This document shows positions 6,004-31,074 of a DNA stretch of 35,050 nucleotides, piece by piece (positions within the stretch are counted from its first letter, which is position 1; each line of letters starts with the position of its first letter). The stretch is from Perkinsus chesapeaki ATCC PRA-425. Taxonomy: Eukaryota; Protista; Perkinsozoa. The stretch spans positions 1 to 35,050 of the forward strand of contig JAAPAO010000372.1 of assembly GCA_013115145.1 (NCBI GenBank), given 5' to 3'. A program made the position numbers and the translations under genes. A model generated the notes under the pieces. That model was not told the DNA's origin, did not search any database, and saw nothing but the letters and a program-made list of their open reading frames with translations.

Positions 6004-6216
6004 GAACTTTAATAAAACTCGGTATGAGTTGATTGATAAACATCATGGTGTCATACAACATACAAATGAATAATGGTTTTGGTATTATTAATAACATCAT
6101 AATAAAATAATATTAAATAAATATTATTTATAGACTATTAATGGATTATATCTTTTATCGATTAAATATATTAGATAGTAACACCAACAATTCTCCATCA
6201 TTCGCCATCCTCTTTT
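6004..6216 (-). repeat. Shared 3' element, copy 1 (160-nt core 6004-6163), downstream of secreted paralog A
   Basis: Reverse complement matches 23615-23774 and 29170-29329, with 3 differences to each by eye. Confidence 0.95.
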
Positions 6217-6233
6217 TACAATATATCTTCCGA

Positions 6234-7283
6234 TCAACTCCTACGAGTTTTCGCTGGACGACTTGGTCTTCTAATCAACCTCTTTAGACGCCCAAAGCGT
6301 GACAGTTGCTTTCCCGGTTGTTCAGTGCCCCCTCCGTGAACCATCTCATCATCTTCCGACATATCCGCATCGTCATTCAGTAGTTTACTTCCGAGCTCAT
6401 CTTTCTCAATGCCTGGAGATATGGGCAAAAATCTTCGAAGTGATCTCGTTATTCTTTTCGTCCTGGATGGTTCCCTTTCCGCCTTGAACAAAGCTGCTAT
6501 CTGATCTTTAGTAAGTGCCTCTCCATCGAGGATGCTCTCACGAGCCTGTGGGAACGTTGCCTTCCAACCATCAAAGAGGCCAACGTTAACTGGCTCAAGG
6601 ATAAGGCGGCGAGTTCGGCCGTCACTTTCCAGCACCACCTGCATAGCCTTGCCATACATAGTTCGTGCGAAGCTACCATAGGGCCAACCCTCCACATTGG
6701 AGGACTGTAGTTCGCCATTTTCATTCGTAACGACATCCACGTTTATATCGTCTTCGGTGAAGCCGTAGTAACGCGTATTAGGAGCAGCTTTTCCGCCGTC
6801 ACTGTCAACATCTACGTGATGTAGCTTGCCTTTCGTACAGAGGCCGTTCAGCTTTTTGACGATGGGGTCTTTATTCGACAAAGTCTTCACTATGACCGAC
6901 CCTGCTGAATCCTCCTTAGATATCGTGCTTGTGAGGTCCTGGAAGCAGGTTTTGTCAGATATTTGAACCTTGGCGATGAAGTTTTGGCAACCGCTTGTGC
7001 TGTTGACAGTAGATATCAGCACGAATCGCTTGTCCTCATTCTTGTCCTGCAGAACGCAAAGCAGTGTTGCAATTGTACCTTTATTCTAGCTCACCTTCGA
7101 TTTCCTAGCCGTAGTTTCATCGTTCATAATCACGTAATAGGTCGTACCCATTTCATCATCTCCAAGCAAAACGTGGAGATGCGGCTGAGCAGGTCCAGTC
7201 TGTAACGGATCATCACCCACGACGATCCATAAAGCTGCCACTAGTGACACGCTCCGAAGTAAGGTTGACGATGTAATCTTCAT
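6234..7283 (-). CDS. Secreted hypothetical protein, paralog A (2 exons: 7283-7095, 7046-6234; about 333 aa)
   Basis: MKITSSTLLRSVSLVAALWIVVG is signal-peptide-like. A 48-nt GTGAG..CTGCAG intron (7094-7047) removes the in-frame TAG. Motifs YYV, GCQNF, YYGF, MYGKAM, LEPV and DGEAL are shared with paralogs B and C. Confidence 0.82.
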
Positions 7284-7378
7284 AAATAAATATCTCTGAA
7301 TGCAGTACAGTGAGGCTACTAAGTGTATCGCAGCAAGGAGGAAGCTGTTCAATGCTCGAAGAAGCGAGCCGTTTACGC

Positions 7379-7397
7379 CGTCTCGTAGGCGAGCGAG
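7379..7397 (-). promoter_or_regulatory. Upstream motif TCGCTCGCCT-N-GAGACG of paralog A
   Basis: The minus strand reads TCGCTCGCCTACGAGACG about 96 nt upstream of the ATG. The same motif lies upstream of B and C. Confidence 0.6.
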
Positions 7398-7545
7398 AGT
7401 GTGTAATTGTAGGAAATGTGTATTCGAGCTATCACGGATGTAAAATACTTCCTGCCTAAAGGAAAGTGAAAATATCAGGTTCCGGAATTTCAACACACAC
7501 AGAGTGTTGGAAGCTGCGCCGTTCGATTCGCACTGTAGAACGGTT

Positions 7546-9662
7546 TCATTGGTGTAGCGCACGGATCGTTAACCTCAAAAGCAGCTTGGAAAGCAAGTCT
7601 CTCAGGAAAGATTGAGAGTACCCTCCGCCGGCGACTGACATTGCGGGCAATAAAGGCTTCATGGCTAGCTTTAGTTCATCTCTCCCCATGCAAGTAGAAC
7701 TATTTCGCTTACCATCAGAATCACTGTGCCTTAACGTAGAAAGGCCTAGCGAGGATAAAACGATGTGTTTGCTAGCTTGGCATGATGACCGTATTACTGT
7801 CATAAAGGTACCAAGCACTTCTTCACCGTTGTCCGAGTGATTTGCTATTCAGCGCAAAGTGTCAACTATGATGGAGCAAGACCCAGTCGATGCATCCAAT
7901 GTCCGTCTCGTCTTTAATAACTTAGTACGAATAGGAGACTAAAAAGTTATAAACCTGTTTTCCAGATACTCGAGGACAATTGTACGGTAAGAGACGCTGG
8001 GCTGAAGGACGGCGCGCACATAGATCTTTTGCTCAAGCTTCCCGGCACTGACTCATTCGAGCCCATGCCCAATACTTCTCATGACGATGATTTACCAGAT
8101 ATGTCAGATGTTTAGATTTTTTACGATAGCATCTGGTCTGTTGTGTGATAAGCAGTTTAAAGCCTCTCAAGTGCGTCAAGCGGTAAAAAGGACTTTCATT
8201 ATACTAACGGCAGTTGCACATAAAGCGGATAGTCTAATTAGGCCATTTCCGTCGTTTAATGGACTATAAACTCCCACACACATACTAACGAAACACAAGT
8301 CCTGTATTGTCATACCAGCCTTTGCACGATTTCTGATGCAAACGCTCTGCCGGCCACTGTGCCTATGTTGCGCCTTAGTGTAGATAATTCTGACGGATCT
8401 GCTCTGCCAAGGATGACTGATCGATGGGAAGCCGCCAAGGCCATGTCAAGGAGGCGGTCAGCAATGATGCCCTGAAGGAGCCTCCTCAGATATAGTATAC
8501 TTAACACACTTTAAATGAGCCTATCACAACCGATCTCCGTGGACGCAAGGAAGTAAAGCTTATCCTAATACTTGCTATGTTTCTCTGTATGCTTTGGAAT
8601 GTTGAGGCGGAGTAACTGGGCGACATATAACACTCATTGAGCGCCTGATACTGACGGTATGCTACCATTATGGGAGTATATCGATACACAGTCGACCCGA
8701 GGTCAAGAGTATTCTTGTATCAAAACGGATATGACCTACGTAGATTTTAGTCGTGGATGCACTATACGACAATGATGTCAGTTTCTTTAATGAAAGGTTG
8801 CGCACTATACACTGGAGGTTCTACTGCCCCTCCAGTAATATGAAAAAAAAGCTGAAACAATAGCCAGTAATATCAACTGGAAGCATATCAGGCAGTTCGA
8901 CCTTGTCAAGCACCACGGCTGGATCTTACGTTCAGTATGTCATCGAGGATCTCGGATGAGATAATAACACCTTCACCCTCGGCAACAACTCGCAGTAGAC
9001 TGTCGCATATGACGATTTCTAGGAACCTAATATTTTGCTCACCAATAATAGCACAACGGTTACTCACGTGGAGTCAAGCTCTTGAAACACATCGTCGGTT
9101 TCGGACTTACGACTGAGTTGGATGAGCTTTTCTTTGAACGTGACATGCCTACCGGGGCCCGCGAGCTGATAATAACACAGTAAGGTTCAGGAATGGCAAG
9201 AGAGTTCTCTGGCGTGCTTTCCTCCGTTCCATATTTGTAATACGACACGTGGTAGAACATCTCATAGAGATCATACAGTAGAGAGCGCCATCCAGCGATG
9301 AGAGTCATCGAGCGATTATGATGAGAGTCTTATCTACGCACGTCTTGTAGTGGGTGATGTACAGCATTGCTGAGCAAGCTCGGCAACTTGCTGTGCATGC
9401 CACTACTGTACTAGAGAAAAAGCACTTCTGCCACCTCTTTCTGACGTTTCTCTTTCAAGCTCTTCACACATTGAGCCGCGAATTCTCTAACCTATTTGGT
9501 ATAATCCTCATCAGTATATTCACATTATTGTTTTCGACATACCACTTCTTTTGCAATTTCCCGACCGTTAATCCCGATTATCTCTTCGATGAGTTCATCG
9601 TGTACCGCGACGATATGTTTCGGAAAGCTGGCGATAATGAGCGCTTGAGATTTCGATGGCAT
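7546..9662 (-). CDS. Hypothetical multi-exon protein(s); may be one or two genes
   Basis: Coding-like minus-strand segments bounded by GT/AG: MPSKSQALIIASFPKH.. from 9662, LYDLYEMFYHVSYY.., LRRLLQGIIADRLLDMAL.., LRDLLSKLLLRLTIRALHQ* ending 7546. No family recognised. Confidence 0.4.
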
Positions 9663-9735
9663 CGGTGAGTTCTTAATGTTCGCCGAAAATTAACTTGAAG
9701 CTCAAACACAACAGAGCTGAGTTGGGGTAAGCCCT

Positions 9736-11992
9736 TCAATCGTGCTCTTCGTTTTCGCCAAAGTACATGCCATGGATGAAATTGTGATAAATCTGATCAC
9801 CGACGCCAAACGGCGCGTTGAACTCCTCAAAAGTAAGTTCACCGAACTCGTGGTATCTGAGAATCCTGAACACACTTAATAAGCACGATTTCCGCTCTAA
9901 CCCGAGGGAATCCCAGATGTCCATGGCTAACTCTCGAATGTCGAATGCGCGAGCGAAGGACGGCTCGCCGCCAGGGTTCAGGCAGAAGGTCTTTATAATG
10001 GCGCGGACGACTTCGCTTCTTTCCAGGGAGCCTGAATTGAGCTTCGACTTTGGCATGCTATTTCGACCGTACCGTTCCTGTTGCCGTCCCAGAAATCGAA
10101 CCATGCCATCGGATGCGAGTCGAGATCTGGAATATCTGACGGTCGCAGATTTACACTGTCTGATTTGATATTGTTGAAGTTTCGCAGAAGATACCTTGCA
10201 AGAGGTTTACTGGTGTACACCAAATCATAAGCCTACTGACGAAGGCCTCTCCGAGGCTCCACAAATTCAGTGAGCGTGATGACGCCGTCATTATCAGGGT
10301 CCCAGACCTCCCAATTGTCCTCGATCGCCCTAATAGTCGACGAATGAACAGTCTCTTCTCGCGAGTGCTACACAGCTAGCTTGTCTCTTGCTACTGGCAA
10401 GACCGCTCCAAGGGCGCCAAGGACCTCCTCCTGGTCTAGGGTCCCCCCGGAATCGATGTCACAGAGCTGAAACCATGCTCTGGGATCCTGAATAGATTCA
10501 ACCCCGTCCGATCAAGCCGGAACGCTAAGTCGAACCTTGAAGACGTCCGGTAGAGTTTTTATCTCGCTAAATCTGGCTCCACAAATAGGGCACTCTTGGG
10601 CAGACGGGTAGCCTGCGGCGCGTGCATCCGACCTTGAAAAATATCTTACACGATTGCTAATGGGTCGCATTCTACGCATTCTTAGCCACGAGCCTTTTTA
10701 TGCACTCTGTGTGGAAGTAGTGCGGACACGCTCGTCGGCTTTGAAGACGTAGGATGCCCACTGGCAGGCGGAAGAGCTCAAAGTAGCATACCGAACACTC
10801 GTTGAATCTAATGCAATCAAGTACGCTGTTTGTCTTGTACCGATACGCTCTGACCTTTCAGCTATACTAAGCGATTCGTAGCGTCGCGAAAGTACAGTAG
10901 GAGCTAACCATTGTGGTAGAACTTCAAGGCTGATCACACTGAGCACCTGGCAGGCGGTCCACTTCTCAACAGGAAAACCCCTCACGAGCCCAGTCTGATC
11001 GTTTCTCCATTCTTTCTCTGTCTCTACTGCTCGCACTATGTCCGGAGGTTCCCCTGTGTCCCACGAGAGACTAAGGACCTATGTGACGCTGATCACTCAT
11101 GTGGGAGAGTTCGAGACATCTCACGTTCTCAGCAAGCCGCCACATACCGACGAACTGGCGTCTTCTGGAGTAAAATATTCCTTGATCGGGTGCGCCAATG
11201 GGATCCTCGGGTTCGTTGAACAGGAAAAGATCTTCTTCGGGCCACTTAGGGTTAGTTGCCTGAAGCGAAACGTCGTCAATACTGCTCCCAGCTGGACGAT
11301 GCTAAAATTCCTCTTGGAATATCAGAAGCGCTCGTAGTGTAACGGTATCATACAAGCTTCCCATGCTTGTGACCCGGGTTCGACTCCCGGCGGGCGCAGT
11401 TTATATTACCTTCATGCTCACTGTGGACAATTGAGGTCTGCTAACCTGCGTATCTAAGCTTGTTTTACGATGAACTCTATTGGGACCTGACTTATCCCAT
11501 ACTCATTAAACAACTTCCCCTTCTGTCAGTCAACTCACCCTGTGATCTATTCCTAACACCCCGCAGAGCACCTACTCCCATTTTCAACGCTCGGCAGCAC
11601 CCTTCTTCAACACAATTATTTTTGGGCGCGCGCCAAGTCATGCAACCGCGCAGGAAATGGATTTGTAGATGGCCGTTGATTGAAGCCCAGGTTTCGCAGG
11701 TTACCGCTTGCTGCGAGGTCCATGCAATAAAGAACAAACAGCTCACAATTATGCTCGCTTAGCTTTGCGTCCTCGACTGCCTCCACAGACCTCGATCCCC
11801 ATGGCTCAGTCCCCCGGTGACGTCGCACAATACTTTTGCCGTGGAGGATGGGATCGTTCACTCCAGTTTCATTGTCTTAAATGTTTACTTCATCGCCCCA
11901 TGATTACTGCTCTGCCACACAGCTTGCCTCGGCCACTCAGGACTGGCAGCCACCGCCTCCACTGACAGGAGACTCAGATTTCGAGACGCCAT
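9736..11992 (-). CDS. RING-H2 finger + EF-hand protein (putative Ca-regulated E3 ligase), multi-exon; core 9736-10800 firm, 5' extension tentative
   Basis: CSVC (10786-10797)..CPHYFHTEC..CPIC (10581-10592) fits C3H2C3. EF-loops DIDSGGTLDQEE, DPDNDGVITLTE and DGNRNG|SLERSE, plus a degenerate fourth. Confidence 0.78.
11328..11398 (+). tRNA. tRNA-Gly(CCC)
   Basis: Full cloverleaf: acceptor GCGCTCG/CGGGCGC, D-stem GTGT/ATAC, anticodon stem CAAGC/GCTTG with loop TTCCCAT, T-arm CCGGG-TTCGACT-CCCGG. Confidence 0.96.
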
Positions 11993-12563
11993 GCTTGATA
12001 GGTGTAAGCCTTCCCACCACGACGACGCTCATCTCTTCTTATATTATTTGCCAATAGAAACTGCACTTGACAATCAACACAGTCCAGTGGAAGAGTAAAG
12101 AACAGACTCTTGAGCTGTGGTCTGATCGATCCTCGTGGCGGATTGGTCGGGACGCGGGGAATGACGTCCAGGTTCTAGATCCGAAGGTCTCAACCGTCCA
12201 TGTAAAGTCTGACGGACTCCGGTGCGTTTAAAGCTTTTACAGGTTCGAATAGATCATGATCCTTCTAGTGACGATCCCGACGAGCAGATTACTATCACTG
12301 ATGTGTCCCGGAACGGGACTTACCTCGGCACACGGCGACTGCAGCCTAATAAAACCGAGGTTCTCAAGTACTAGAACGGAGAACAATCTCACCCATGAGC
12401 TTTGGTATTGCTCAGACCGGGGGCATCATTCTCCTTGGTTACTTCCCCTTATATCCGAGGCCACCCTGAGCCACTGTTACAGGCGACCTGGAAACCATCT
12501 GGGTTTGAAGAGCCCATAAAGGAGTTTGTCAACTCGGACCCTGTTATTGGTCTAACACAGGCG

Positions 12564-15192
12564 ATGCCTCCGGGCCCTACACAAGGTGGGAGCGCTAAGC
12601 GATGCGCAATTTTTACGGTTTTTCTATCAGTTCAGCAGGAGACAGCCCCGCAGCGTAAGAAGGAGCGTGAGACTGTCGGACAGCAGGATCCTGTTATAGC
12701 CCAGCTTAGTGGGGATATCAAGTACTATCTTATCTCGAGCTCAACGGGATCACCAGTTAGATTTCAATGGCGACCGTCGACTGCCAAAATGTCGAAGGAT
12801 GGTCTGCGGAGCTCGGTCGTGATCGGCCGGAATCCCGCGTCGGAGATAGTTGTCAATGACGATAGGATATCTGGCTCGTAATAGGAATGAGAGCAGCAAC
12901 AGTCGTTGGTGGAAGTATGGTGTTGCTATTTTAAGGCATGTCACTTTGGAGCACGACGGGGCGTCATTCCATATAATAGATTCCTCGACTAATGGAACGT
13001 ATCTTAATGAGGAAAGGTTACCTAAGAAACATGTAGGAAGACGGGGGTGGGTTGAATAGGGGTAGTTGGGCCATTTCGAGGAACCTAGGACACTGGGATG
13101 GCCATTCTTAGAGAATGGTTATATGTTACGAGTGATGCGGAGTGGGAGATATAATAGAAAGGTGTTTGGTAGGAACCAGCGGAAGTATCGCAAAGAGTGT
13201 CTTTTATTGTCTGCTTGTAGTGTAAACAATTAAAGTGCTCTGTCTGGGAATAGTCGATGCTTCTTCGTGATTCCTTAACCCATAGCGCTCTTTTCGGACC
13301 CTTCTCCAGTTGTCAGCCTCGAGCCCTATTTCCAAATACGATCGTCATCGTGGTGGTGGTTTGGATTGCGGTTCCTCGAACTCTACCGAAATTTTCTAAT
13401 CAAAAGCTCTGAGCTGCCAAAACCGTTCCTATTGTACTTTTCCATGATTTGGCGCTCACCGATGGATATGATGCTCAGGTACATCCTCTGAAGTCGGGAG
13501 ACCATGTGTCGCTGGCGTCTCTTGGAAAAGATGTCTTGCAGGCACCAGGGGTAGAACCTGGGATCGTAGGATGAAAGCACAGCGCTCCCCTCACTGAGCT
13601 ATTTAGGAGTTCACATTTCGTGCAGTGCTCACAGAATATAAGTATAGCGCTGTCCACGGCAATGTCGATGTAGTGAGGCCGCTTGGCAAGAAGGCACCAA
13701 GCATCACAGCTGTCAACACAGCCGACTCGGACCCCCCTCGGGACACTTTCGGTCGAGCCTTGGAGGACTTGTACGTTTCTGGATGGTGACGCCTTTGTTA
13801 CTGGGGATGTGTCAGGTATTATATAAATGCTCGGCTTGGACAGGGTAACTTCGCCACGGTCCACAGCGCGACAGAGAAAAAGGAAGGAGGAAGGCAAGTG
13901 GCAATTAAGGAGTTGGACTTAGCCAAGTTGCTGAAGTTCCAGCAAAACACTAAGTCTAATAGTGTCACTTTTCGGTAGGTATATGGATTTCATACCGCTC
14001 TTTACTCTGATCAGGTCCGAATTCGAGGTGCTCCGCGAACTTAACCATCCCGCCATTGTTAAATTTTACACCTATTTCGAGAACTCTCGAAGCCTGTTTA
14101 TCGTGACCGAGCTGATGAAGGGCGGCGACCTGTTGGATCGTCTTCTGAATAATGGAGCGTAATCTGGGGCGCGCGGGAAAATTTATTCCGTTTTTCTTCT
14201 GGCAGGTATCGGGAGGCAGATGCTCGAGTGCTATTTAGGGACTTGTGCAGCGGAGTGGCGTATATGCATAGTCATAATATCATTCACCGTGATTTAAAAC
14301 CAGAAAATGTCGGTCGGGGGGTTCGAACCTGCGCTGGTCTAATGGATGGTCTTTTGTTAGATATTACTAACCGCTGATCAGCGGCACGGTAAAATATCCG
14401 ATTTGGGCTTAGCTCGGCACACTAATCCTCTCACTGGGGAGGCTGCAGGTGAGGGCGGGGATTCGAGCAACCTCGAAGATGCTCTACAGTGGAGTAATGC
14501 TGGTGTTGTTATATAGGAAGTTTGGTAGGAAGTGTGGGCCTAGCTATTAGATACTGGTAGCTGATCTTCTATTAATGTCTGGGAGATAATCTTCATAGAG
14601 TCGATCTCCCAATGATTTGGGCAGAAATAATAATAGTTTTCATACCTACATCTACATCTCTCATCATCTCATCATCTCTGACATATTCTATAACCGCGAT
14701 CAGCTGTATATTTTACCGTACTCCATTCGGTTCTAGGCGGGATTCGGGTTTTCGGGTTTCGGGTTTTCTTCTGTGTGGTTCACGCTTGTTCAGGTACCTA
14801 CTGTGGCACTCCACACTACTTCGCCCCGGAAATGGTTATGTTGAAGCTCGGTCAAAGGGGAACATACGACAACAAGGTCGATTGCTGGGCACTTGGAGTC
14901 ATATTGTGAGAAAAATGCAAGGTGCCGGGATCGAACCTGCGCGGGATAGGTATGTGATTCTCTCGGCAACCCCGCCGTTTGCAGCTGATGATGATCCTGA
15001 TGGTAATGGTGGAGTGTTAGATCAGAAAATATTAAATGCCGAGTAAAAATGGCGGTGGTGGGAATCGAACCTGCGCGGCAGATACACGTTCGCCTATGCT
15101 GAATGGGAGGACGTCACAGAGACGGCCAAGGACCTAATTGACATGTTCTTGCAAGTTGATGATAGAAAACGATGGTCAGCTCAGCGAGCATT
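12564..15192 (+). CDS. FHA-domain Ser/Thr kinase, CHK2/Cds1/Rad53-like, multi-exon; last exon unresolved (gene extends past 15192)
   Basis: FHA motifs [23 protein letters not shown] and [10 protein letters not shown]. Kinase motifs [45 protein letters not shown] and AKDLI. Splice phases checked for the C-lobe introns. Confidence 0.9.
14309..14360 (+). other. Intron with antisense tRNA T-arm/B-box (GGTTCGAACCTGCGC)
   Basis: GT..AG intron between KPEN and ILL, phase 0. Confidence 0.75.
14906..14949 (+). other. 44-nt intron that is essentially an antisense tRNA-gene 3' end
   Basis: Reverse complement reads GCAGG-TTCGATC-CCGGC-ACCTTGC-A-TTTTT. Splicing restores GVILYVILS. Confidence 0.8.
15043..15081 (+). 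other. 39-nt intron that is essentially an antisense tRNA-gene 3' end
   Basis: Reverse complement reads GCAGG-TTCGATT-CCCAC-CACCGCC-A-TTTTT. Splicing restores NAEYTF. Confidence 0.8.
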
Positions 15193-15803
15193 GTAGGCAT
15201 TAGGAGGTCGTGGGTTCGAACCCTGGTGGGGTTATATTTTAATTGATATATTCTCTCATCTCGAAGTGTATCTGATTGACCTGTCCACTGCTACGCATGA
15301 CGATTGATGATGGCGTGCACTCCTACGCACAGTTTTCCTAGTCTTCAAGACTTCCCTCTGACATCCATTTCGTAATAGCCTTTTATCGCCTATTTATGAT
15401 AGCTGTTATAGACTGTTTTAAGGCTCCCTGTTGAGGAAAAGGGAATATTCAATAATAATTTAGATGTTCATTGGTGAGTCATTCTGTGTAGGGACGAGCA
15501 CCAATGGTTCGTAAGTAATGACCACGACGAGTCCACAGCAGCGCCGAGCTCTCCACCAGCAGCTAAGCGAAGGAAAACAATGACGGAGAGTGATGAGGGG
15601 GATAATGGTGAGAGTTGAGGAAGGAGCGGTATGGCGCAATGGTTGTTGTTGCACGCATGCGCATGTAGAATTTACCGGGACGGAGCTGTCGGATAGTCCG
15701 TCGAAGCTATCAGCCAATAGATGCAGCAGATCAATTCGAACAACGTCGACTCATGAGTGAGGTTCGACGTTGGTGAGTAGCAGCAACAATGCAGTATTTT
15801 CTC

Positions 15804-19216: not shown

Positions 19217-19252
19217 GACTGTCATGACTGTCACGACTGTCACGACTGTCAT
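19217..19252. repeat. Tandem 9-mer (GACTGTCAY)x4
   Basis: Read directly from the sequence; intergenic. Confidence 0.9.
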
Positions 19253-19839
19253 CCTCATCGATGAAGATAGATTATTATTAAAGTTAAAGCAGTCACTGAT
19301 CAGCATGATGATGATGATAGTGCTATGAGATTGTTGTTGTCACTACTATTAGTATTTACATTAATGTATAGGTTAAGTCAATAGCAACAACAAGAACACT
19401 GTAGAAGCGAAATCATCATCATTACTCTTGTGTTGGTCAATTTACTTGTCTTCGTTGAGGCCACCCTAACGAATAGGTATTTGTCGACTTTTCATTTGCC
19501 ATCAGCACACATAGATTGGAGTTTATGAGATCGTCTTAGACCACGACGATGATAGCGGAACCTCAGAAAGTAGACAGACCTGTAAGGTGTCACACGCCGC
19601 GTCTCAGGACTAGTGTCATGGAGAGGAGCATCACTTCACTCAGCAAAGCCACTCCTGGTCAATCACGTAGCTCGTCCTTGGTAGCCGTGAAATACTCGAC
19701 CGCTGGTGAATGTCAGCAATTACTTTTTAAATGGCTTTATTGCAGTTGGAGGTCCTGTTGGCAGTCATTTCGCTTATTTGTTCAGTAGATGGTCTCAAGC
19801 TCCTTCGAGAGGAGGTGAGATAGAGCACGTAGAGCAACG

Positions 19840-21547
19840 ATGGATTTGTCTTCGCAGCCGGAGAATAGTATAGTGGCTGGGGCGCCCCTCAACGAAGAAG
19901 CGCCAGAGCAAGTCGATCAGGCTGCTGATGCCTATGTAGGGGTGGAAGATGTCTCCCAAGCTTCGTTGTTCAAGATCATTTTAGTGGGACGGCGAGGAGC
20001 CGAAGTTGAATCTTATGAACAAGGTCGACTGGTCCACTATGGGCACCGAGCCACCTAAGAAGGCTTTCGAGAATTATCGAACAGCTGCGAAGATTAAGTT
20101 CCTCATGCCGGACCTGAGATGGAATCCTGAGTAAGCTTAGTTGTGCTCGTGAGAGATGATCTACTCTCGAAGATATCTCTGCTATAGAGTGCCTACAGTA
20201 CTACTGTAACACTACTGTACTACTAGTACAGTACTTAGCACTGTACTACTAGTACTTAGCTGTACTAGTACTACTTTACCTACTGTAACAGTAGGTACCT
20301 CATAGTAGAGATATCTTTAAGTAGATAATCAACTTAGCTATTTAGTGTGTACTTGATGACTAACCAGTGATCGGTAGTGTAGATTAGCCATACCACTAGA
20401 AGCTGCGAGAAGCTCTATGCGTCTCAACCATGGAGATAGATAGAATAAGGCGAAGTGCATTCGGCAAGAATCTTCATTATTGGCGGCTAGTCTTGATCAC
20501 ACCGTAGGCGCCTGTCAGAAATATAAACTTGGGTCGAAATTATTCCCGAGTCGAATTTCGTGGCGAGAGCCTCTTCCGGTCGGCAGGTATCCAGTCACCA
20601 TCCCCGATGATGTTCTATCAGCCAAGCTCCCCGTTGGGGCGCTTTCACGGTTCATGCTGGAGGATCCGGGGCCGAGGTGCGCTTCCGCTCTTCGGTTGTG
20701 TTGGGATAATTCCTCAAAAGATACGCAGCTATGGTGCAAGACCTGTATACGCCAGACTATATGCTAGATGTGAAAAATATGGTAGCTCGCTCGGTGGTCC
20801 GCGCGAAGCATTACTGCTGTTGTTCCGTCAGCCCGATAACACCACAAAGGTTGTGAAGCGTGTCTCCGAGACCCAACTGCAGACCGACTCGGGAGTGGAT
20901 CTTAGCTCCATCATGCCCTTCATGGTCAGCTCCACGCTGAGGTTGCCGCATTCGGAGTCCGAATTTAGGCTGACGTGCCGAATGCGCCGCCGCCGATCGA
21001 TCCAGAGCTTCAATATGTCCCTCCTGGAGCGTCCGCAGCTGCTAGGGCGCATGTAGCATCTGCGTGATGGTGCCGTTGTGGAATGTTTGTTGTTCAGCCT
21101 GTTAAGATTGCAGTCGGTATCGACCAGAACGGGCGGGAATTATGGGACACTGTGAGCTGGACGAGCTGCTGATTGTTGTCATTTTCGTTGGTTAGATCGG
21201 CCAATACTCTGGTGAGCAGGATACCAGGAATGGAGTGCAGACACCGAATAAGTTGGATGCCATCAAGGAGTTGAGAAAGTGAACAGAGGGCCCTTTGTCT
21301 GTCAAAGATTGATGTTTGCTCAGGAAATTGCAGCAACAACAACAGAGTCTCATACAGCGCCATGTTGTTGAGAAAAAGGTGGGAGCAAGCTAAAGTGATT
21401 GTTGTGAGCCTTGGCTTTCAGAAGGCTCCACCGGGGAAGACCAACTGTGATCCATACGGGTATGATGCGAACAAGAAGTTTAAACCGTGCAAGCATATTG
21501 AATATCGAGCTGCCTCCAGACCACAGTCGAGCGATGATAACGAATGA
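19840..21547 (+). CDS. Hypothetical multi-exon protein
   Basis: ATG at 19840. Coding-like exons bounded by GT/AG (..DWSTMGTEPPKKAFENYRTAAKIKFLMPDLRWNP.., ..KAPPGKTNCDPYGYDANKKFKPCKHIEY..*). No family recognised. Confidence 0.55.
20159..20326. mobile_element. MITE-like foldback element inside an intron
   Basis: Imperfect terminal inverted repeats of about 40 nt (ATCTAC..AAGATATCTCT.CTAT.GAG..CCTAC / GTAGG..CTCATAG.AGAGATATCTT..GTAGAT) around a TACTAGTACAGTAC low-complexity core. Confidence 0.6.
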
Positions 21548-22336
21548 TGTGATGGTGCATCATGACTGTTGTCAATATAACTCATTTGAGTTTTTAAGTT
21601 GCCGGGAAAGGAGTCGTATAAACCAGCATGGGCTCAAACGCCAACTTTATTATCCTACAGGAGCAACAGGTTAAACTGACGGGCTTAATGACAAAATAAA
21701 TAACACAAACAGCGAGGATTGAACGAAAGTTACGAATTTCTAGAAATAGCAGCTTTCAATGCTCGAAGTCGAACAAAGACCTTCTTCATCATCATCTTCC
21801 TCTACAATACGCGCAGACGACATACTTGGGAGCATGAAGGATGGGGAGGGGTTGAGGCAGCCGGGTAACGGTGAACCCTTTGTTGAAGGATGAAACCTGT
21901 GAAACATATTCTTCATTCAACGTGACGATGTGGCATTGTTCCGCAGAATTTATCAACTGCTGTTGACCGAGTAATGTGAATCAATCAATTCAACACCCAA
22001 GCCTCAGCATCTAACACTCACTGCTTATTAACAACTGTGTCATGGAGGACGTTAATCGATCGAATCGAATCCATGAAGCCTCATGGTCCATTAAATACTC
22101 TGTCATGGCAGCAGTGAACTTCATTGAGGGCACATCCGTTCACCAGATCTCCGTACCCTGAAACGTACGCCCAGAAAGCATACTGTTAGTAGATGATGGG
22201 AGCTGTAGCGAGGAGAGCTAATAAGAGAGCTTTGAAATGGAGCGGGGTGGTTGTGTCGCCACTTCTTCCTCTTTACGATAGATCTTCCAGCTGAAGCGCT
22301 GCTGACTACTCTGTATGGGGCAAAGCCGTTATTCCT

Positions 22337-22385
22337 TCGCTCGCCTTTAGACGAGTCATGGTTCCTTCGCTCGCCTTTGGAGACG
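22337..22385 (+). promoter_or_regulatory. Duplicated upstream motif TCGCTCGCCT..(G)AGACG of paralog B
   Basis: Two copies at 22337 and 22367. The proximal copy ends about 120 nt before the ATG. Confidence 0.6.
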
Positions 22386-22506
22386 AGACATGTTAAAGAA
22401 GAGCAGTCCCCTCATCTCTTTGTTCACTCTATCATAACATTCTTTATCCAACGTTGAGGCACCAGTATGTGTGATAGTTTCATTTCGAATCTGTGACTAC
22501 GATTGA

Positions 22507-23574
22507 ATGAGATTCTTCACATCATTGCTCTATTATCTGGATATATCTCTCGTACTGGCAACAAAGGGCATGCTGGAAGATGGCTACAAACCTTTGCCAC
22601 TCTTAATGGGAGAGAGTGATGAAGGGGCAAGATATTATGTACTTCTGACCCCTGCAAACACAAAGGGAAAGACCTGGTCTGGGGACCAGTACTATTCCGA
22701 AGAGGGCTACGAGTGCCGCCCGTTTGTTTTCCTCGACAAGCCGTCTCGCAAGGCTTCAGCTGCTACTGTGAGTGCCTACGTGGTAGACAAAGAGAATGGA
22801 TCTCAATTCTTTGCTGGTGAACCCAGTATCACCCAAGACACTTGCGTCAGAGAACTAAAACGTTACGATCCAACGGTGGAACCCCAACACAGTACACTCC
22901 TGCTGACCGGTACTTTCTCACTCGATGATCCAAGTGTAAAGTCTCTGAACAATATGTATAAAAATGAAGAACTTCTCTATAAAGTGACTGGTGAGGAGCA
23001 GCCTGCTGCCAATGCTTTATATTATGGGTTCGTCAAGAATAATCTAGAGGTGAAAGTGAGCACCGATGCGAAGAGGAAGATCAAGACCGTTGAAGTTGAG
23101 GACTCCACGGGTGTTGGATACGGAAGGTTTCAATTCTTGATGCTTGGCAAGGCCATGCTAGTGAGACTGCGGAATGCTCAACAACGGAGGACCCTAGTCC
23201 TCGAGCCAGTTGATAAAGACAAGTTCGCTGGGAAGGCGACATTCGTGGATGCCCGACTCGACTCTTTCGAAGGTGAGCCTTTCAGTAAGGATCGCCTGCC
23301 TGCTCTATTGAACCTGAAGAAGCCCAAGAATAAACCGTCCTTGGCCGCACGCGTGAGGGAATTCAGTCTTTCATCGAGGCCTCAAACTGCGCCATTACAG
23401 AATGACGGGGCGAAGGGTGCAGGTGAGGCAGTAGGCGAAGACAGTGGGAGAAAATCGGATGAGAATTCATCCTCGAGACTTTGGGGATCAATTAGGAAAC
23501 GGATTCTTTCAGCGAGATCCCGTAGGACGAGCAGCACGTCAACAGAAAAGCGGTCAAAAGAGGATGGCAAATAG
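22507..23574 (+). CDS. Secreted hypothetical protein, paralog B (intronless, 355 aa)
   Basis: Long ORF with a hydrophobic N-terminus. Motifs RYYV, GSQFF, ALYYGF, LGKAM, LEPVD and EGEP are shared with A and C. Confidence 0.88.
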   Translation: MRFFTSLLYYLDISLVLATKGMLEDGYKPLPLLMGESDEGARYYVLLTPANTKGKTWSGDQYYSEEGYECRPFVFLDKPSRKASAATVSAYVVDKENGSQFFAGEPSITQDTCVRELKRYDPTVEPQHSTLLLTGTFSLDDPSVKSLNNMYKNEELLYKVTGEEQPAANALYYGFVKNNLEVKVSTDAKRKIKTVEVEDSTGVGYGRFQFLMLGKAMLVRLRNAQQRRTLVLEPVDKDKFAGKATFVDARLDSFEGEPFSKDRLPALLNLKKPKNKPSLAARVREFSLSSRPQTAPLQNDGAKGAGEAVGEDSGRKSDENSSSRLWGSIRKRILSARSRRTSSTSTEKRSKEDGK

Positions 23575-23796
23575 ATGGAGGATTGTTGGTGTTATTATTT
23601 AATGTACTGTATTTAATCAATAAAAGATATAATCCATTAATAGTCTATAAATGATATTTATTTAATATTATTTTATTATGATGTTATTAATAATACCAAA
23701 ACCATTATTCATTTGTATGTTGTATGACACCATGATGTTTATCAATCAACTCATACCGAGTTTTGTTAAAGTTCAAGAATAATGGTAAACCAGAAA
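23556..23796 (+). repeat. Shared 3' element, copy 2 (core 23615-23774)
   Basis: Near-identical to copies 1 and 3. Its 5' part overlaps the last codons and stop of paralog B. Confidence 0.95.
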
Positions 23797-24466
23797 CATA
23801 CGAGCGCATACAACCAAGTTCTACTTGCGAACGAATTCTCTATCCGTCTTGACGACTTCGCACTATACAGTATAAACTTTATAGGTCTAACTGCCACCAA
23901 GACTGGGTCAAGCTTACTTATAACTGTATAGTATAAAGTCATCAAGACGGATTCTTATCAAATCAAGAGTATTCAACTTACGGGCGAGCAACGATGAACG
24001 GAATACGGGCTACTTGCAGACTCAGACTGAGTAATCAATCCGACTGGTCATCTCATGCAGCATTTCATCCTTACAAGTGTTACTAATATCAAATTTCAGT
24101 TGGTGGGTTATCAGCAAGTCGTAATGTGTGTGAGTTTATAGTCCAACGCCGAAATTGGCTTAGTTAGACTATCCATTCAATGTGCAGCTTCAGAGCGAGA
24201 ATTTAATACCTATACTGTTATTGCCACTGTAGGGTTTACCAAAAACGAATGTAACTAGTCTCCAGAGATCCTACTCCTCCTAGCAGAATTCACTTACGCA
24301 AACAAGGGCCTGTGTACAACTACCAAAACACAATGGCTCCCAAGGTGCGAGACCAGTAAGTCGTTATGAGGTTCAGTATTGAGCTTCCTTTTTTTACCGC
24401 TTCACTATGACAAAACGAACTTCGATAACATTTCCGGAAACATTGGTGCAATTCGACATGTTGAAT

Positions 24467-24761
24467 TCAATCATCATCTTTAAGCATCTCATCAACTTGT
24501 TCCCATCTTGTAAGGACAACCGGAGGAGCTTTCCCTTTAAGGCTCTCCTCGAAGCATTTGTTATATTCCTGAATAGACAAATGCTAACCGACTAAACCCT
24601 TCAATGTTTACCTTCAGTTCTGTCTCGCAGCGTTGAACTGCCGTGCGGGCCCTCTCCACGCTGCCTTCTGGTTGACAGGCGTCACGGAAGCAGTCAAAGA
24701 ACTTACTAGAGACTTCAGTGCAACCAGGGCGGACTATTGGGAAATGGGCAGGAAGAGACAT
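24467..24761 (-). CDS. Twin Cx9C (CHCH-type) small protein, 83 aa, 2 exons (24761-24612, 24568-24467)
   Basis: Removing the 43-nt GTAAAC..TTCAG intron gives CTEVSSKFFDC and CETELKEYNKC, both exactly Cx9C. Confidence 0.8.
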
Positions 24762-24824
24762 AGCTGGCCAAAAGCTAAACTTGAATTTTAATTTAGGAAA
24801 ACTCAGGTCAATGTGATAGAAATG

Positions 24825-27314
24825 TTAAGTCTTGTGAAGCTCAATATAGTCACCAATCTCAACCGGCACTCGTTTAAGTGGACCACTTTGATGTTTGCCC
24901 AACTTCGGTCGCAAGAGTACAACGCGACCTCCGGGGCCAGTAACTGGGAAAATAATCAACTAACAAACCTGTCCATTTCTCACCTGACGCTCGGAGACTC
25001 TTCTTCCGTCCCATCTTCACAGCGTCCTCGCGATCAGCGAACGACACGAAACCAAACGGTCGCGATTTATCATCTCGCTTGATTGGTGGGCGGAATTTGC
25101 CGGGAATTCGCACATGATTGACGACACCGAACTCGGAGGCAACTTGCTTCAAAACATCCTCTGTTACTTCTTCAGCTACTTCCCAATCGTAACCGACGAA
25201 GACATCGGTGCATCTGATCATCTAATGCCAGCAGCTGGAAATCGGATAACTTACCCATTTAGGTTGTTGTAATGTTTGTTGCGGAGGTTAACGCTGGCGA
25301 ACTCTACAACACAATTGCCTCGCCACTCGAGCTCTCCCTGGAGAAGAGAAGTCATGTCGTATACCTCTCTCCTCTTCACACAAATATTTTCTATCAGAAC
25401 ATCATCTATTAGCCGGCTGTTGTGTTGGGTGGTACAACTGATACCATAAGTTCTCCTCACCGACTTTGATTCCATATAGGGATATGCAATAAACTCCGCG
25501 AACATCGCCAATCCTATTTTTCCAGTACTGGACCGTAACGCGCACTCGAGGGATGATTAATGATTATAAACCACATAGATGTTAACGAATCGCAGAGGGA
25601 TATACTTACTTGCGGAGTCGGCTGCTGAAGCTCCCATGTGACGGTATGAATGGCAGAGGCGTCGGGGAAGAGCGCGGACAGCTCAGCATCTCGCCACTCA
25701 GATGGAATATGTTCGACCTAATCAGTGTCGCTAAGCCCCATCATGGCAAGCTCTCCCCACAGCGATTTCTCTTTCCCTCAGTGGTGGACCAATCTTCAAT
25801 GCATGAGACAGCTCGAGTGCCTTCTCGTCGTCCGGTGCATTTTGTTCGTTTGCCTGCTTACCCAACTCGACAGCAACACATCCCTCCACAATATTGATAA
25901 CGTCGGTGGATTCCGCCAGCAGGGGGTCGGTGATGGTGTGATCTGGGCACAGGTGAGTTGATCACCGCAGCCGAGGAACGCATCACCTACCTTTGTGACG
26001 TGTCCCGAGTTTGGCATCTCCTAGGACAGCTTGTCGAAGCTGGTCATGCGTCAGAGGCAATTTGATGTAAGCATCGTCCTTGTTGAATTTGGATGCATCA
26101 ATTTCGAATAAATGAGTCATCTGATAACCAAGGCACCCTGGTTCGAATCCCACTCCCGGTAACTTTTCTTACGGGAAGCCAACACTCATGTCGAATCTCC
26201 AAGGCCCTGGCTGGTAGCATAGTCTGACATATCAGCACTCAGATAATCGTGGCCTCCTCTCTGTTGAAATACCATGCAAAGGATAATCGTCCCACTATGC
26301 ATCAGATTCATCACTTTGTGTCGGGCAGCACTCAACGTCAGAGAATCATCATCATCCGTGATGGCTTCTATTCCTGATATGCCCAATGGCGAGCCCGACT
26401 AGAGTTCGTAACACACCTGTGTGAGTTGGTCGGATATCTGCCACAGCGCCGAGTGGCTTCACCTTAAGGTCGAGGATAACCTTGTTGGGCTGAATAAGAT
26501 ACTCGGTCGCCGCAGCTGGCATGGAAGCTCACTTGGGCATAGTCGCGAACCACAACTCGGCACACTTCCCGGCCAAGAGTCCTTCCGTCACTGGGATCCA
26601 ACGTGGAACACATCCCCACGCTGATGGCAATCACATCACGCCTCCGAGTCGGGGATGATGGCTCCGTTGCCTGACCGATCGCTGGTGTGTCTCGCTCAAG
26701 CCCTAAACTAGTTTATTTCCAAATTGCCAGTTAAGTTAATTCACCTCTTGTAGAAGGCCAACTCTTCGCATCGGCATCCGGGTCGATAAGAGGCTCGAGA
26801 CCTCGAGCGCTCCCACTCAGCCGAGCACGTATTAACAATCGTGTGTGAAGGCAAGTCAGGACCTACAACAGACGTCTAAAACTATTCGGATTCCTCGGGG
26901 TACATTCTCAGGTATCTCGTAGGACTTGGCCTGCATGGCTGCAACGGCCGGATGACGGATCCTCTTTGGTTTTGGTATTGCCAGCGGTGGCGTGACCAAC
27001 CGACTAGCATTCGGCTCCAGTGCTTCGGCCGGTCTGAGGTGCATTACTGCAATACCTGAGGTGCGTCGAGCGACGTACCTCTTTTTAGTCGATTTTGTCG
27101 ATTTCTCATCAACCCACAGTGACGACAAAACATCCCCTTTCCCAGCCTCTCGCCGCAACAGATCGGCCACATCGTTCATTCGACCGGTGAGGAGCACGCG
27201 CTCAAGTCTAGTTATCTCATCAACCGTCTCTGCTGCTTCTATAGCAGCTTTAAGCCGTGACACGTCAGCTGGGGATAGCTTGTTCGATATTGGAGCACCG
27301 CCGGGAGCGGACAT
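24825..27314 (-). CDS. REXO5/REX1-like degenerate DEDDh exonuclease domain + RRM domains, with a U2A'-like N-terminal helical motif; many exons
   Basis: Spliced product VIAISVGMC..GREVCRVVVRD..LIQPNKVILDL..SGI..SLTLSAARHKVMNLMHSGTIIL..LEIRH follows the REX1 exonuclease pattern. RRM features: VEHIPSEW, RGNCVVEF and RPFGFVSF. Confidence 0.7.
26121..26172 (-). other. 52-nt intron that is an antisense tRNA-gene 3' end
   Basis: Intron GTAAGAAAAG..TATCAG. The plus strand reads CCTGG-TTCGAAT-CCCAC-TCCCGGT-A-ACTTTT. Splicing gives an in-frame ECWLP|MTHLF junction. Confidence 0.78.
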
Positions 27315-27882
27315 TAAATATTGTCAGTGAAGAACTTATACGACACAAGTGTACATCCCCCCGATCATAGCAGAACGCGGTCGTTTGACCCCCTGGCCCG
27401 AATCGCTCCGGGCGATGCGGTGCTCCCATAGTCTCTCCAGTCTGCTTTATTCGACTTTGATAAACCGTCCCGTTCCGCACGCATGGCGAGAGAACACAAC
27501 TCATTCATCGTAGGTTGAGATGACTTTGAAAATGTACTATTTGGAGAGGAGGATAAAGGATGAGGGGCAGACAGGATGGTTGACAAACAAGACAGCGAAA
27601 CCATCGCGCAGGAGCGGTATAAAGAGACCAATTACAAAGCTCGGTCGTCTATTAAAATATCTTGAACATTAATCCTTTTATGCTGCGCAGCTATAATCGT
27701 GCGTCAAATTCTCACAATGTGAGGTTCACATTCAGGATTACCCCTCTTCCCTCAGTTACACGCATCCTGCATTAATAAATCATACCGTTTTGGTATAGCT
27801 GAATCAGGGTGAACCAGATATATAAGCGATGAACGGTTTGTTGGCTCGTTCGTGACGAACCAGCTGCGTGGCGCTCAATTAC

Positions 27883-28003: not shown

Positions 28004-28028
28004 CTAAACGCGTAGTTCATGAAAACTA

Positions 28029-28069
28029 TCGCTCGCCATTAGACCCGCACTCGCTCGCCTTAAGAGACG
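28029..28069 (+). promoter_or_regulatory. Duplicated upstream motif TCGCTCGCC..GAGACG of paralog C
   Basis: Copies at 28029 and 28051. The proximal copy ends about 115 nt before the ATG. Confidence 0.6.
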
Positions 28070-28184
28070 AGACATGTTGCAATTGAGCAGCATAATATTT
28101 CCATTATCTGTTCTATTATCTTATTCACTTGTTAATGTGATATAGTGTGTGATAGTTTTATTTCGTATCTGTTAATAAGATTAA

Positions 28185-29132
28185 ATGATCTTTCAATCAT
28201 CTATCTGTCGTATTATTATTGCATGTCTAATGTTGGTAGTATCACAAGTTAGAAGTAGGGCAGTTAAGAAGATGCCACCAGCACATTTCATATTCGGAGA
28301 TGATGGCCACGGTAGAAGATATTATGTAGATGTTATCCCAGAAGGCATGGAGCTGGTTCATGAAGACCATTTCACGTATATTGCTGACGGGTATGCTTGC
28401 TCACAAAGAACCATTACTCAACGCTACTCGGACACAGCGCCTCGCTGGGTGTACATTTCCACGACTGATGAGGAGAAGGGCTCTCAAAACTTCCGAGGTG
28501 AGCTGGATATCTCCGACGAGGAATGCGTTGCCACATTCCAACTTCTCGAAGACGTACGCCCACAAAGCGGTCCGTTGAAAGTCGTCGATAACATCGGCAA
28601 AGACCAACCTCTTCTCAAGTCCTTCAATGAGATGTATCGAAATGGGAAACTTCGATACATGCAGTTTCACGAAGTTGACAAACCTGCCTCAAATGCTCTT
28701 TACTATGGATTTAAGAAAGATGGATTCGACGTCCAGATTACTACAGATGGCGACGGAAGGATAAACTCAGTAGTGAAGAATGACCCAAAGGGATTGAAGT
28801 TTAAGCGGTTGGTCTATGTAATGTACGGTAATGCGATGAAGGTAACGTTCTATGATCAAAGTGTAACAATGCATATAAACCTAGAACAAGTTGACAAAGG
28901 CAAGGGTAAGGAGGGATTCGCCCAGTCCCGCGTGCCTGTGGCGGAAGGAGAACCTCTGAACCAAAAAAAACTAATGGCTTTGGTGTACCCAGAGGAACCC
29001 GAGAGCCCGAAGACTTCATCCGTTGGTAACTTCTTATCGAAATTCGGTCTTGGTAAGAAGCGTCAATATCGCCGAGTTGGCAGCCACTCTTCGAGCGAGG
29101 ATGATGAGCAGGAATCACTCCTTGGTGAGTAA
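28185..29132 (+). CDS. Secreted hypothetical protein, paralog C (intronless, 315 aa)
   Basis: Signal-peptide-like MIFQSSICRIIIACLMLVVSQVRS. Motifs RRYYV, GSQNF, ALYYGF, MYGNAM, LEQVD and EGEPL. Confidence 0.88.
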   Translation: MIFQSSICRIIIACLMLVVSQVRSRAVKKMPPAHFIFGDDGHGRRYYVDVIPEGMELVHEDHFTYIADGYACSQRTITQRYSDTAPRWVYISTTDEEKGSQNFRGELDISDEECVATFQLLEDVRPQSGPLKVVDNIGKDQPLLKSFNEMYRNGKLRYMQFHEVDKPASNALYYGFKKDGFDVQITTDGDGRINSVVKNDPKGLKFKRLVYVMYGNAMKVTFYDQSVTMHINLEQVDKGKGKEGFAQSRVPVAEGEPLNQKKLMALVYPEEPESPKTSSVGNFLSKFGLGKKRQYRRVGSHSSSEDDEQESLLGE

Positions 29133-29156
29133 AAAGCAATGGTGAGAAGAGCAGAG

Positions 29157-29351
29157 TGTTGGTGTTAATAATCAATAAAAGATATAATCCATTAATAGTC
29201 TATAAATAATATTTATTTAATATTATTTTATTATGATGTTATTAATAATACCAAAACCATTATTAATTTGTATGTTGTATGACACCATGATGTTTATCAA
29301 TCAACTCATACCGAGTTTTGTTAAAGTTCAAGAATAATGGTAAACCAGAAA
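29157..29351 (+). repeat. Shared 3' element, copy 3 (core 29170-29329)
   Basis: 2 differences to copy 2 and 3 to copy 1 over the 160-nt core. Shares an extra 3' stretch (AAGAATAATGGTAAACCAGAAA) with copy 2. Confidence 0.95.
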
Positions 29352-31030: not shown

Positions 31031-31074
31031 TAGCTCAGGAGAAACATTCAGTATCAACTTGTAATAATCCTCAA

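Follow-up and report, generated by a model that had tools for sequence, protein, structure and literature searches.

A near-identical A/T-rich block behind the genes of a diverged Perkinsus chesapeaki family: a probable case of concerted evolution in a non-coding 3' flank

In snake-venom PLA2 and conotoxin families, untranslated regions are more conserved than the coding sequences, a pattern that has been ascribed to positive selection on the protein and that goes with low synonymous change. Gene conversion, which is GC-biased in most eukaryotes, is the main process by which the VSG genes of trypanosomes are exchanged. Genome dynamics have been little studied in Perkinsozoa, the sister group of dinoflagellates, to which the clam parasite Perkinsus chesapeaki belongs. 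VSG genes are dissimilar save for ~200 bp of C-terminal coding sequence and the 3'UTR (PMC2900300), and a motif of the VSG 3'UTR is required for high mRNA levels (PMC5698767).

The window analysed here is an entire 35-kb contig of P. chesapeaki (35,050 nucleotides). A first-pass annotation had pointed to three copies of a 160-nt element in this window, differing at two or three positions and located just after the stop codons of three strongly diverged genes. Pairwise counts over the 160-column core confirm this (A-B 3, A-C 3, B-C 2 differences), and each of the three copies has the same orientation as its gene, from whose stop it is 37-70 nt away. In 60-nt windows, DNA identity is 95-100% in the block vs 30-60% in the upstream ORFs, which are homologous with a residue identity of 28-31%. 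With ~20% G+C, the block is also the most A/T-rich stretch of the contig. The relevant features of the window are as follows.

6004-6163, minus strand: core of 3' block copy A; the match covers 6004-6176 and similarity to copies B and F reaches ~6219
7283-6234, minus strand: gene A, 349 codons, interrupted by a single in-frame stop (7088-7086)
22366..22392, plus strand: conserved motif upstream of gene B (TCGCTCGCCTT..GAGACGAGACATG), located ~115-140 nt ahead of the ATG
22468..22510, plus strand: gene B leader, before and across the ATG, moderately conserved (86% to gene C)
22507..23574, plus strand: gene B (FOL47_006620), a 355-aa ORF
23602..23800, plus strand: 3' block copy B; the core occupies 23615-23774 and a further 27 nt are common to copy C only
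27770..27828, plus strand: decayed relic of the block 3' end, ~220 nt upstream of the gene C promoter motif
28049..28340, plus strand: gene C 5' block (promoter motif, leader and first ~52 codons), 99-100% to paralogue E on another contig
28185..29132, plus strand: gene C, 315 aa, mosaic relative to paralogue E, within the interval that contains two family genes in P. marinus
29169..29355, plus strand: 3' block copy C, core 29170-29329

The relic was recognized by a local alignment score of 24, compared with a mean of 11.6 and a maximum of 16 in 100 shuffles. The upstream motif (TCGCTCGCCTT..GAGACGAGACATG) has two matches in the window, vs none expected by chance, and is also found upstream of the paralogues D, E and F on other contigs. 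The start of the block, first read as AAT(A/G)ATAAAAG, is in fact AATC(A/G)ATAAAAG; a poly(A)-like signal resembling AATAAA is indeed present at the start of most copies, the internal AATAAA being replaced by GATAAA in copy A and this part being absent in a fourth paralogue. A short ORF starts within the block (33 codons in B and C, 127 in A), which we did not take as coding because its stop position differs among the copies.

The genes preceding the block form a Perkinsus-restricted family whose proteins, of ~320 residues, are predicted to be beta-rich and to carry an N-terminal signal-like helix. In the model of the gene B protein, an N-terminal hydrophobic helix is followed by a confident beta-rich domain (residues 27-275) and a disordered basic tail. 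The earlier description of these proteins as secreted is to be read as a prediction from this helix (model residues 6-24). The family proteins have no match in Pfam, and a Foldseek search of the model (201 residues at pLDDT >=90) against PDB and AlphaFold clusters recovered only Perkinsus relatives. Its restriction to Perkinsus makes the family, which has a confident beta-rich fold lacking a solved-structure match, a candidate for a role in the interaction between this shellfish parasite and its host. Gene A, which NCBI has fused with an upstream RING/EF-hand gene as FOL47_006617, carries a premature stop and is followed by a block at 98-99% identity. This situation suits recent inactivation or conversion alike.

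Once the rest of the family had been fetched, the block turned out to be present behind all six P. chesapeaki members found. These are distributed over three contigs: the window carries A, B and C, a short contig (L001) carries D, and a third one (L002) carries E and F. The six copies have the same orientation, lie 35-70 nt past the stop and exhibit 1-5 pairwise differences per 160 positions. The copy after D begins 20 nt later than the others, and a further copy upstream of D matches the 3' 100 nt only. A dead seventh member on L002 is followed by a copy that is 78% identical and has ~23-32 nt deleted. An assembly artefact can be ruled out because contigs from two separate DNA studies cross from unique flank into the block, and the copies cannot be allelic since the flanks of those in the window, L001 and L002 are unrelated. 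The short contig L001 terminates within the block.

In run X2, the cleaner of two DNA runs, word depth is 527 at position 23723 vs 70.6 in the single-copy flank, a ratio of ~7.5. This value roughly agrees with the number of near-identical copies found (seven), so that the block looks specific to the family and does not resemble a high-copy repeat. In run X1, depth is ~26 times that of the flank, and unseen copies of the block may exist. An unrelated dispersed repeat located 350 nt from the block reaches 150-2200 times. On the three contigs examined, family genes adjoin every copy of the block, whether near-identical (seven) or decayed, as well as the relic that precedes gene C, and a high-copy repeat spread behind unrelated genes, which the first-pass annotation had named as a refutation of its proposal, was thus not what we observed.

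These data also bear on the suggestion that an element inserts specifically into the 3' ends of the family. The block would then be a small mobile element (MITE/SINE-like or a fragment) and its copies recent independent insertions, which could account for near-identical copies set in unrelated flanks. Two features of the window, a Ty3/gypsy-like ORF and a separate, unrelated repeat of very high copy number, point to intense transposon activity in the genome. However, the depth in X2 matches the copies already found beside family genes, and terminal inverted repeats, target duplications and fixed ends are all absent. The fold of the block has no terminal stem, and the copy ends are ragged and vary from one copy to another. 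In addition, the similarity in A, B and F tapers gradually as it enters the coding end, and an old copy, 78% identical, occupies the same place behind the dead paralogue. We therefore consider insertion of a mobile element to be highly improbable. The block is not an LTR of the Ty3/gypsy-like ORF (212-4738) either, as the other copies lack such a neighbour and depth is low. The mtDNA of P. chesapeaki is 86% A/T (PMC9550989); present-day mtDNA at >=90% identity could be ruled out, the depth of the block in X1 and X2 being far under the organelle level.

The boundaries of similarity differ from one pair of copies to another. Copies A and F share a tract of 212 nt (99%), B and C one of 187 nt, and C and E one of ~330 nt that includes the coding end. 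The last 27 nt of the B/C tract are common to these two neighbours and absent from E, the sister of C. Beyond its core, copy A retains similarity with B and F that runs into the part forming the coding end in other paralogues, and A and B are ~94% alike for ~50 nt upstream of the block, into what was the ancestral coding end. A and F have two diagnostic variants in common, whereas their coding parts are far apart and the protein tree places F with C/E, at only 85/80. With 1-5 differences per pair, variable sites are too few for a tree of the block alone, and the apparent incongruence between block and coding tree draws on these two variants and on the lengths of the tracts.

The most explicit case is the C/E pair, in which similarity begins at the promoter motif and stops at the end of the block, within unrelated flanks. 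Along one alignment, synonymous divergence changes by segment from 0 (55 codons) to 0.86, 0.18, 0.79 and 0.19. Such a juxtaposition of saturated synonymous sites (dS 0.8-1.2) and tracts with a dS of 0 implies a mosaic ancestry.

The P. chesapeaki paralogues are monophyletic in the protein tree (100/100), although gene order in the window agrees with that of loci in P. marinus and P. olseni, where family genes occupy or adjoin the corresponding intervals: gene A adjoins a region where P. olseni has three of them, and gene C lies in the P. marinus interval mentioned above. Trees grouping genes by position were rejected (p-AU 0.004 and 0.0001). Lineage-specific duplication and loss may be an alternative explanation for this clustering by species. 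Altogether, the block combines what is expected of a conversion tract, being more alike than the adjacent homologous sequence, synonymous sites included (97-99% vs 30-60% for coding DNA), with end points that vary between pairs of copies and with paralogues that cluster by species despite shared genomic positions. Conversion within the block itself is read here from a comparison of paralogues rather than from alleles or strains differing by a tract.

Strong selection on a 3'UTR could also keep a non-coding block constant. The block would in this case be a cis-regulatory element (RNA regulon) co-regulating the stability, localisation or translation of the family mRNAs, maintained by purifying selection alone without conversion. 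Its fixed position and orientation past the stop and the AATAAA-like start of most copies agree with such a function. The decayed and partly deleted copy behind the dead paralogue indicates a block of long standing in the family that degenerates once it is no longer maintained, a state also predicted by pure purifying selection. This escaped copy has drifted to 34% G+C (19 A/T-to-G/C differences vs 3 in the opposite direction), as if A/T-richness were maintained in the others. Nevertheless, an identity of 97-99%, distributed evenly along the 160 nt, far exceeds the 70-93% of the family's own 5' motif and leader, the tract ends vary, A and F are linked by common variants and by a longer tract, and the block is intact behind gene A despite its premature stop.

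Conservation in the orthologues of related species, expected for a regulon, was not observed either: blastn and nhmmer detected no block in the family loci of P. olseni and P. marinus (74.6 kb), syntenic homologues included, and no other near-identical tract lies behind these homologues, whose 3' flanks have 40-56% G+C. We found neither a conserved structure nor a known RNA family. The fold of the block is not more stable than that of shuffled sequences (z -0.42 on the plus strand, -0.57 on the minus strand), Rfam gave no match on 23450-24450 with E up to 1, and at gathering threshold it retrieved only a tRNA from the whole window. Searches of RNA data at gene B gave no transcript match: this gene was not found in the listed RNA runs, no contig of two small RNA runs aligned with the tested stretch (gene B only), and protein searches yielded no transcriptome-derived family member. 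A regulon maintained by selection alone thus appears unlikely to us.

We favour the view that the block is a 3' flank of the family homogenised by gene conversion, perhaps also under selection, and give it a probability of about 0.62. Among the three explanations proposed in the first-pass annotation, the one invoking conversion is the best supported, by variable tract ends, the C/E mosaic and clustering by species; the associated idea of an anchor that swaps ORFs fared less well, as exchange inside the coding part is seen in C/E only. The block would be a shared family 3' flank, probably a 3'UTR or polyadenylation-termination region, that originated in the lineage of P. chesapeaki, before the family members separated. 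Its near-identity amid saturated coding parts would be kept by repeated conversion, between neighbours as well as across contigs. An identical tract of 160-210 nt should provide enough homology to repair a break in one copy from another, so that the tract would maintain itself, while diverged coding DNA on one side and unrelated downstream DNA on the other would halt the exchange. A 3'-end function may be under selection as well. What the data show is that the block lies behind each family member found, in an approximate number of copies, that the C/E pair has a mosaic history, and that the sister-species loci lack the block; homogenisation by conversion and any role in the mRNA are inferred.

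One could go further and suppose that the block is a designed homology arm, with constant 5' and 3' blocks that, much as in the VSG genes of trypanosomes, direct a duplicative exchange of the variable beta-domain between loci to generate or switch variants. The precise extent of the C/E homology, from promoter motif to block end between unrelated flanks and with a mosaic interior, is suggestive in this respect, as is the constant 3' end of VSG genes. Yet the other pairs of paralogues have nothing in common past conserved protein motifs, the family is small (six genes and one dead copy), and an expression site, silent archives and switching lack support. Moreover, the host is a mollusc and is not known to have antibody-based immunity. 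An arm designed for antigenic exchange is, in our opinion, very unlikely. A related reading is a small cassette system in which a constant 5' arm (promoter motif, leader and signal peptide) and the A/T-rich 3' arm would direct ectopic conversion, shuffling segments of the beta-domain between unlinked loci, with the 3' arm made A/T-rich by A/T-biased or mutagenic conversion in P. chesapeaki, opposite to the GC bias of most eukaryotes. We regard this reading as quite doubtful.

High-identity tracts tend to be A/T-shifted: GC3 is 0.29 (the 5' block of gene C) and 0.42-0.44, compared with 0.51-0.55, and the block itself has 20% G+C, although one of the three C/E high-identity coding tracts exhibits no such shift (GC3 0.51). 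The extreme A/T content of the block may be a by-product of long-term conversion in P. chesapeaki. Conversion tracts of this species may drift to A/T, which, if confirmed genome-wide, would matter for research on biased gene conversion.

The block is most likely a genuine and orderly instance of a known process rather than an element of a new kind. As an example it is clean and small, its members can be listed in full, and concerted evolution is limited to a flank that does not code, beside coding parts whose divergence has reached saturation. From a practical point of view, the block might serve as a probe for retrieving every family member, and this family-specific stretch of ~160 nt is a possible 3' flank for Perkinsus transfection constructs.

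A close parallel is concerted evolution by gene conversion, in which a tract is likewise far more alike than its surroundings and has variable ends, synonymous divergence jumps between adjacent segments, and paralogues cluster by species. Here, in contrast, what is homogenised throughout the family is a non-coding tract a short way beyond the ORF, most of the coding sequence escapes, and the extreme A/T-richness of the block is the opposite of the outcome of GC-biased conversion. The PLA2 and conotoxin families similarly have non-coding flanks that are better conserved than the part coding for the mature protein, but the P. chesapeaki genes differ in having saturated synonymous sites beside tracts without any synonymous change. 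With MITE/SINE-type repeats, the block shares a short, A/T-rich and near-identical sequence at several loci; it differs from them in its variable ends without terminal repeats or target duplications, in a copy number close to the size of the family, and in its constant place and orientation in a single gene family. Finally, the VSG genes of T. brucei are highly dissimilar genes for secreted or surface proteins that possess a constant 3' end (PMC2900300), as do the P. chesapeaki genes with their block. The VSG motifs are short (an 8-mer and a 16-mer) and proven in mRNA, compared with a block of 160 nt, and the VSG system comprises thousands of genes, 70-bp upstream repeats and telomeric expression sites, whereas the P. 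chesapeaki family consists of six genes known from DNA alone.

Three family genes in the window are each followed by one copy of an A/T-rich non-coding block, and a repeat search and blastn place the copies at 97-98% identity with one another. The loci discussed here, in the window and on two other P. chesapeaki contigs (L001 and L002), are listed below.

Family genes, block copies and associated features
Window, 7283-6234, minus strand: gene A, ORF homologous to B and C, one in-frame stop at 7088-7086
Window, 6004-6176, minus strand: block copy A
Window, 22366-22392 and 28050-28076: upstream motif
Window, 22507-23574, plus strand: gene B, ORF, 100% match to FOL47_006620 in a protein search
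Window, 23602-23800, plus strand: block copy B
Window, 27770-27828: short remnant matching the 3' end of the block, upstream of gene C
Window, 28185-29132, plus strand: gene C, ORF homologous to A and B
Window, 29169-29355, plus strand: block copy C
L001, 326-352: upstream motif
L001: gene D, FOL47_002951
L002: genes E (FOL47_004021) and F (FOL47_004023)
L002, 7726-8709, minus strand: decayed family member between E and F, annotated as a 234-aa protein
L002, 8741-8767: upstream motif

Over the 160-column core, copies A and B differ at three positions, A and C at three, and B and C at two, in agreement with the two or three differences counted in the first-pass annotation. Its further claim that non-coding DNA is here better conserved than coding DNA also holds: the homologous ORFs upstream share only 28-31% protein identity, and a sliding comparison gives 95-100% DNA identity in the block vs 30-60% in the coding part. 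Each copy lies in gene orientation, as described, and starts 37-70 nt after the stop. The opening motif is present, but its letters are AATC(A/G)ATAAAAG and not AAT(A/G)ATAAAAG. Upstream of the core, the likeness of A and B extends for another ~50 nt. The window makes up an entire contig of the draft genome of this clam parasite, with ~47% G+C; no other 160-nt stretch of it is as A/T-rich as the three copies (G+C 0.19-0.22 vs a mean of 0.467, sd 0.06). The mitochondrial DNA of P. chesapeaki, a possible source of the block, is 86% A/T (PMC9550989).

An exhaustive profile search recovered 26 family relatives, all from Perkinsus or from public assemblies grouping with it; P. chesapeaki is represented by genes A, B, D, E and F, and gene C falls inside the 50%-identity cluster of E. 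No Pfam family matched these proteins. An AlphaFold model built from 18 family sequences is confident (pLDDT at least 90 at 201 residues) and comprises a hydrophobic N-terminal helix (6-24), a beta-rich domain (27-275) and a basic disordered tail; secretion is plausible from this model. Foldseek matched it only to Perkinsus relatives and to no solved structure. Two database gene models deserve comment. FOL47_006617 (823 aa) joins gene A to an upstream RING and EF-hand gene (6234-10100, minus strand), a fusion that is probably a gene-model artefact. For gene B, the NCBI annotation (317 aa) places a short intron near the 3' end (23436-23526); this is probably wrong, since the ORF read straight through closes with an acidic E-D-G-K tail resembling those of D, F and the dead copy. 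A family-specific motif, TCGCTCGCCTT..GAGACGAGACATG, precedes the ATG by ~110-175 nt, except in gene F, where the distance is ~500 nt; it occurs twice in the window, with none expected by chance, and could serve as a promoter or transcript-start element.

The block also follows the stop in all three of genes D, E and F (97-100% identity), contig L001 terminating within D's copy. Another copy on L001, matching only the 3' 100 nt, precedes the promoter motif of D by ~55 nt. The decayed member on L002 retains recognisable N- and C-terminal thirds, its middle being gone, and carries at its 3' end a block of 78% identity with a deletion. Seven near-identical copies are known, every one beside family genes. 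Copy number was estimated by aligning contigs assembled from two DNA sequencing runs of separate studies, X1 and X2, to window 21000-26900; the summed word depths are not copy numbers, and both ratios are rough. In X2, depth is 527 at 23723, within the block, vs 70.6 in unique flank (~7.5x, which agrees with the seven copies found), and a T>C variant at this position, carried by the copy upstream of D, has depth 137. Because a neighbouring repeat is inflated fifteen-fold in X1 over X2, the X1 ratio of ~26x deserves less trust. Taken as approximations, the depths suggest a low-copy block specific to the family, not the high-copy repeat behind unrelated genes that the first-pass annotation had named as its refutation. 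The neighbouring repeat (24126-24355, ~230 nt) is an unrelated, very high-copy dispersed sequence, with word depth from ~150x (X2) to 2200x (X1) that of single-copy flank. Most of its genomic copies differ from the window copy at several fixed positions, a weak match (78%) occurs at 8212-8280, and neither an Rfam match nor a terminal inverted repeat was found.

The suggestion of an element inserting at the 3' ends of this family is not supported: the block has ragged ends that vary from one copy to the next, and neither terminal inverted repeats nor target duplications were seen, so that we reject a transposon. We likewise reject an RNA gene, as either strand folds no more stably than shuffled sequence (z -0.42 and -0.57) and Rfam gives no match, and an exon, as a short ORF starting inside the block stops at different points between copies. 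A Ty3/gypsy-like retrotransposon ORF lies ~1.3 kb from block copy A (212-4738, plus strand; 1508 aa uninterrupted, cut by the contig start), with zinc knuckle, reverse transcriptase, and integrase zinc-binding and core domains.

Neither blastn nor nhmmer matched the block in four P. olseni and P. marinus loci (74.6 kb, about ten family genes), where paralogues likewise share no near-identical tract of any sort; 3' flanks there have 40-56% G+C (five genes, two loci). The handful of bases surrounding the stop (GAATAGATGGAG and variants) is shared across species; the block was therefore added, or evolved, in the P. chesapeaki lineage, downstream of an ancestral stop context. P. marinus locus L004 and P. 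olseni locus L003 are colinear with the window. The interval from the RRM gene to EMC1 holds gene C, and two family genes in P. marinus; gene A adjoins a region flanked by three P. olseni family genes; and a ribosomal L27A neighbour is common to L002 and a second P. marinus family locus. In P. marinus, the interval of gene B lacks any family member. Segments 10400-21500, 24467-27317 and 31070-34800 are strongly colinear with P. olseni contig JABANP010000723.1 and P. marinus scaffold GG679769.1 (FHA-kinase, 494-aa, 83-aa, RRM and EMC1 genes), and a tRNA gene (11328-11398, plus strand; Rfam 62 bits) keeps its position in the P. olseni locus. In the protein tree, where gene A's stop codon was kept and read as X, the six P. 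chesapeaki members group together as a single clade (100/100) in which the internal branches are long. Trees grouping genes by position were rejected (p-AU 0.004 and 0.0001, the closeness of C and E partly dictating the outcome of the first test). Such species-wise clustering at shared positions is the textbook mark of concerted evolution, but duplication and loss together could mimic it.

Genes C and E point to gene conversion. Their flanks are unrelated, and their match runs exactly from the promoter motif (-137) to the block end (+200) as a mosaic whose identity is, in order, ~100% over 318 nt, 50-64%, ~92%, 50-72% and 96-100%. Synonymous divergence in the five segments (Nei-Gojobori) is 0, 0.86, 0.18, 0.79 and 0.19; selection on the protein cannot yield this pattern, whereas patchwork ancestry can. 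Block tract ends vary from copy to copy: B and C, which are neighbours, have 27 nt in common beyond the core that C's sister E lacks, and copies A and F agree at two diagnostic variants and are 99% identical over a 212-nt tract, although A is the most divergent protein.

Could selection alone account for the block's conservation? A decayed block behind a dead gene is expected under selection too, and for this reason we give conversion, possibly acting with selection, a probability of roughly 0.62, and regard selection alone as unlikely. Base composition fits both. GC3 in the high-identity C/E coding tracts is 0.29 and 0.42-0.44 in two and 0.51 in the third, and in the diverged segments 0.51-0.55; the block has 20% G+C vs 34% in the escaped dead copy, whose differences from it comprise 19 A/T-to-G/C changes vs 3 opposite. 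In this small sample, the figures are consistent with A/T-biased or mutagenic conversion and equally with selection for A/T-richness.

Conversion, one part of the proposed recombination anchor, is probable on the C/E mosaic, the shifting tract ends and the species-wise clustering; for a cassette that swaps variable ORFs, as in VSG genes, the mosaic is the one observation in favour. The VSG genes, which are dissimilar save for their C-terminal end and 3'UTR (PMC2900300, PMC5698767), are the model for the cassette idea, with a constant 3' end on otherwise dissimilar genes.
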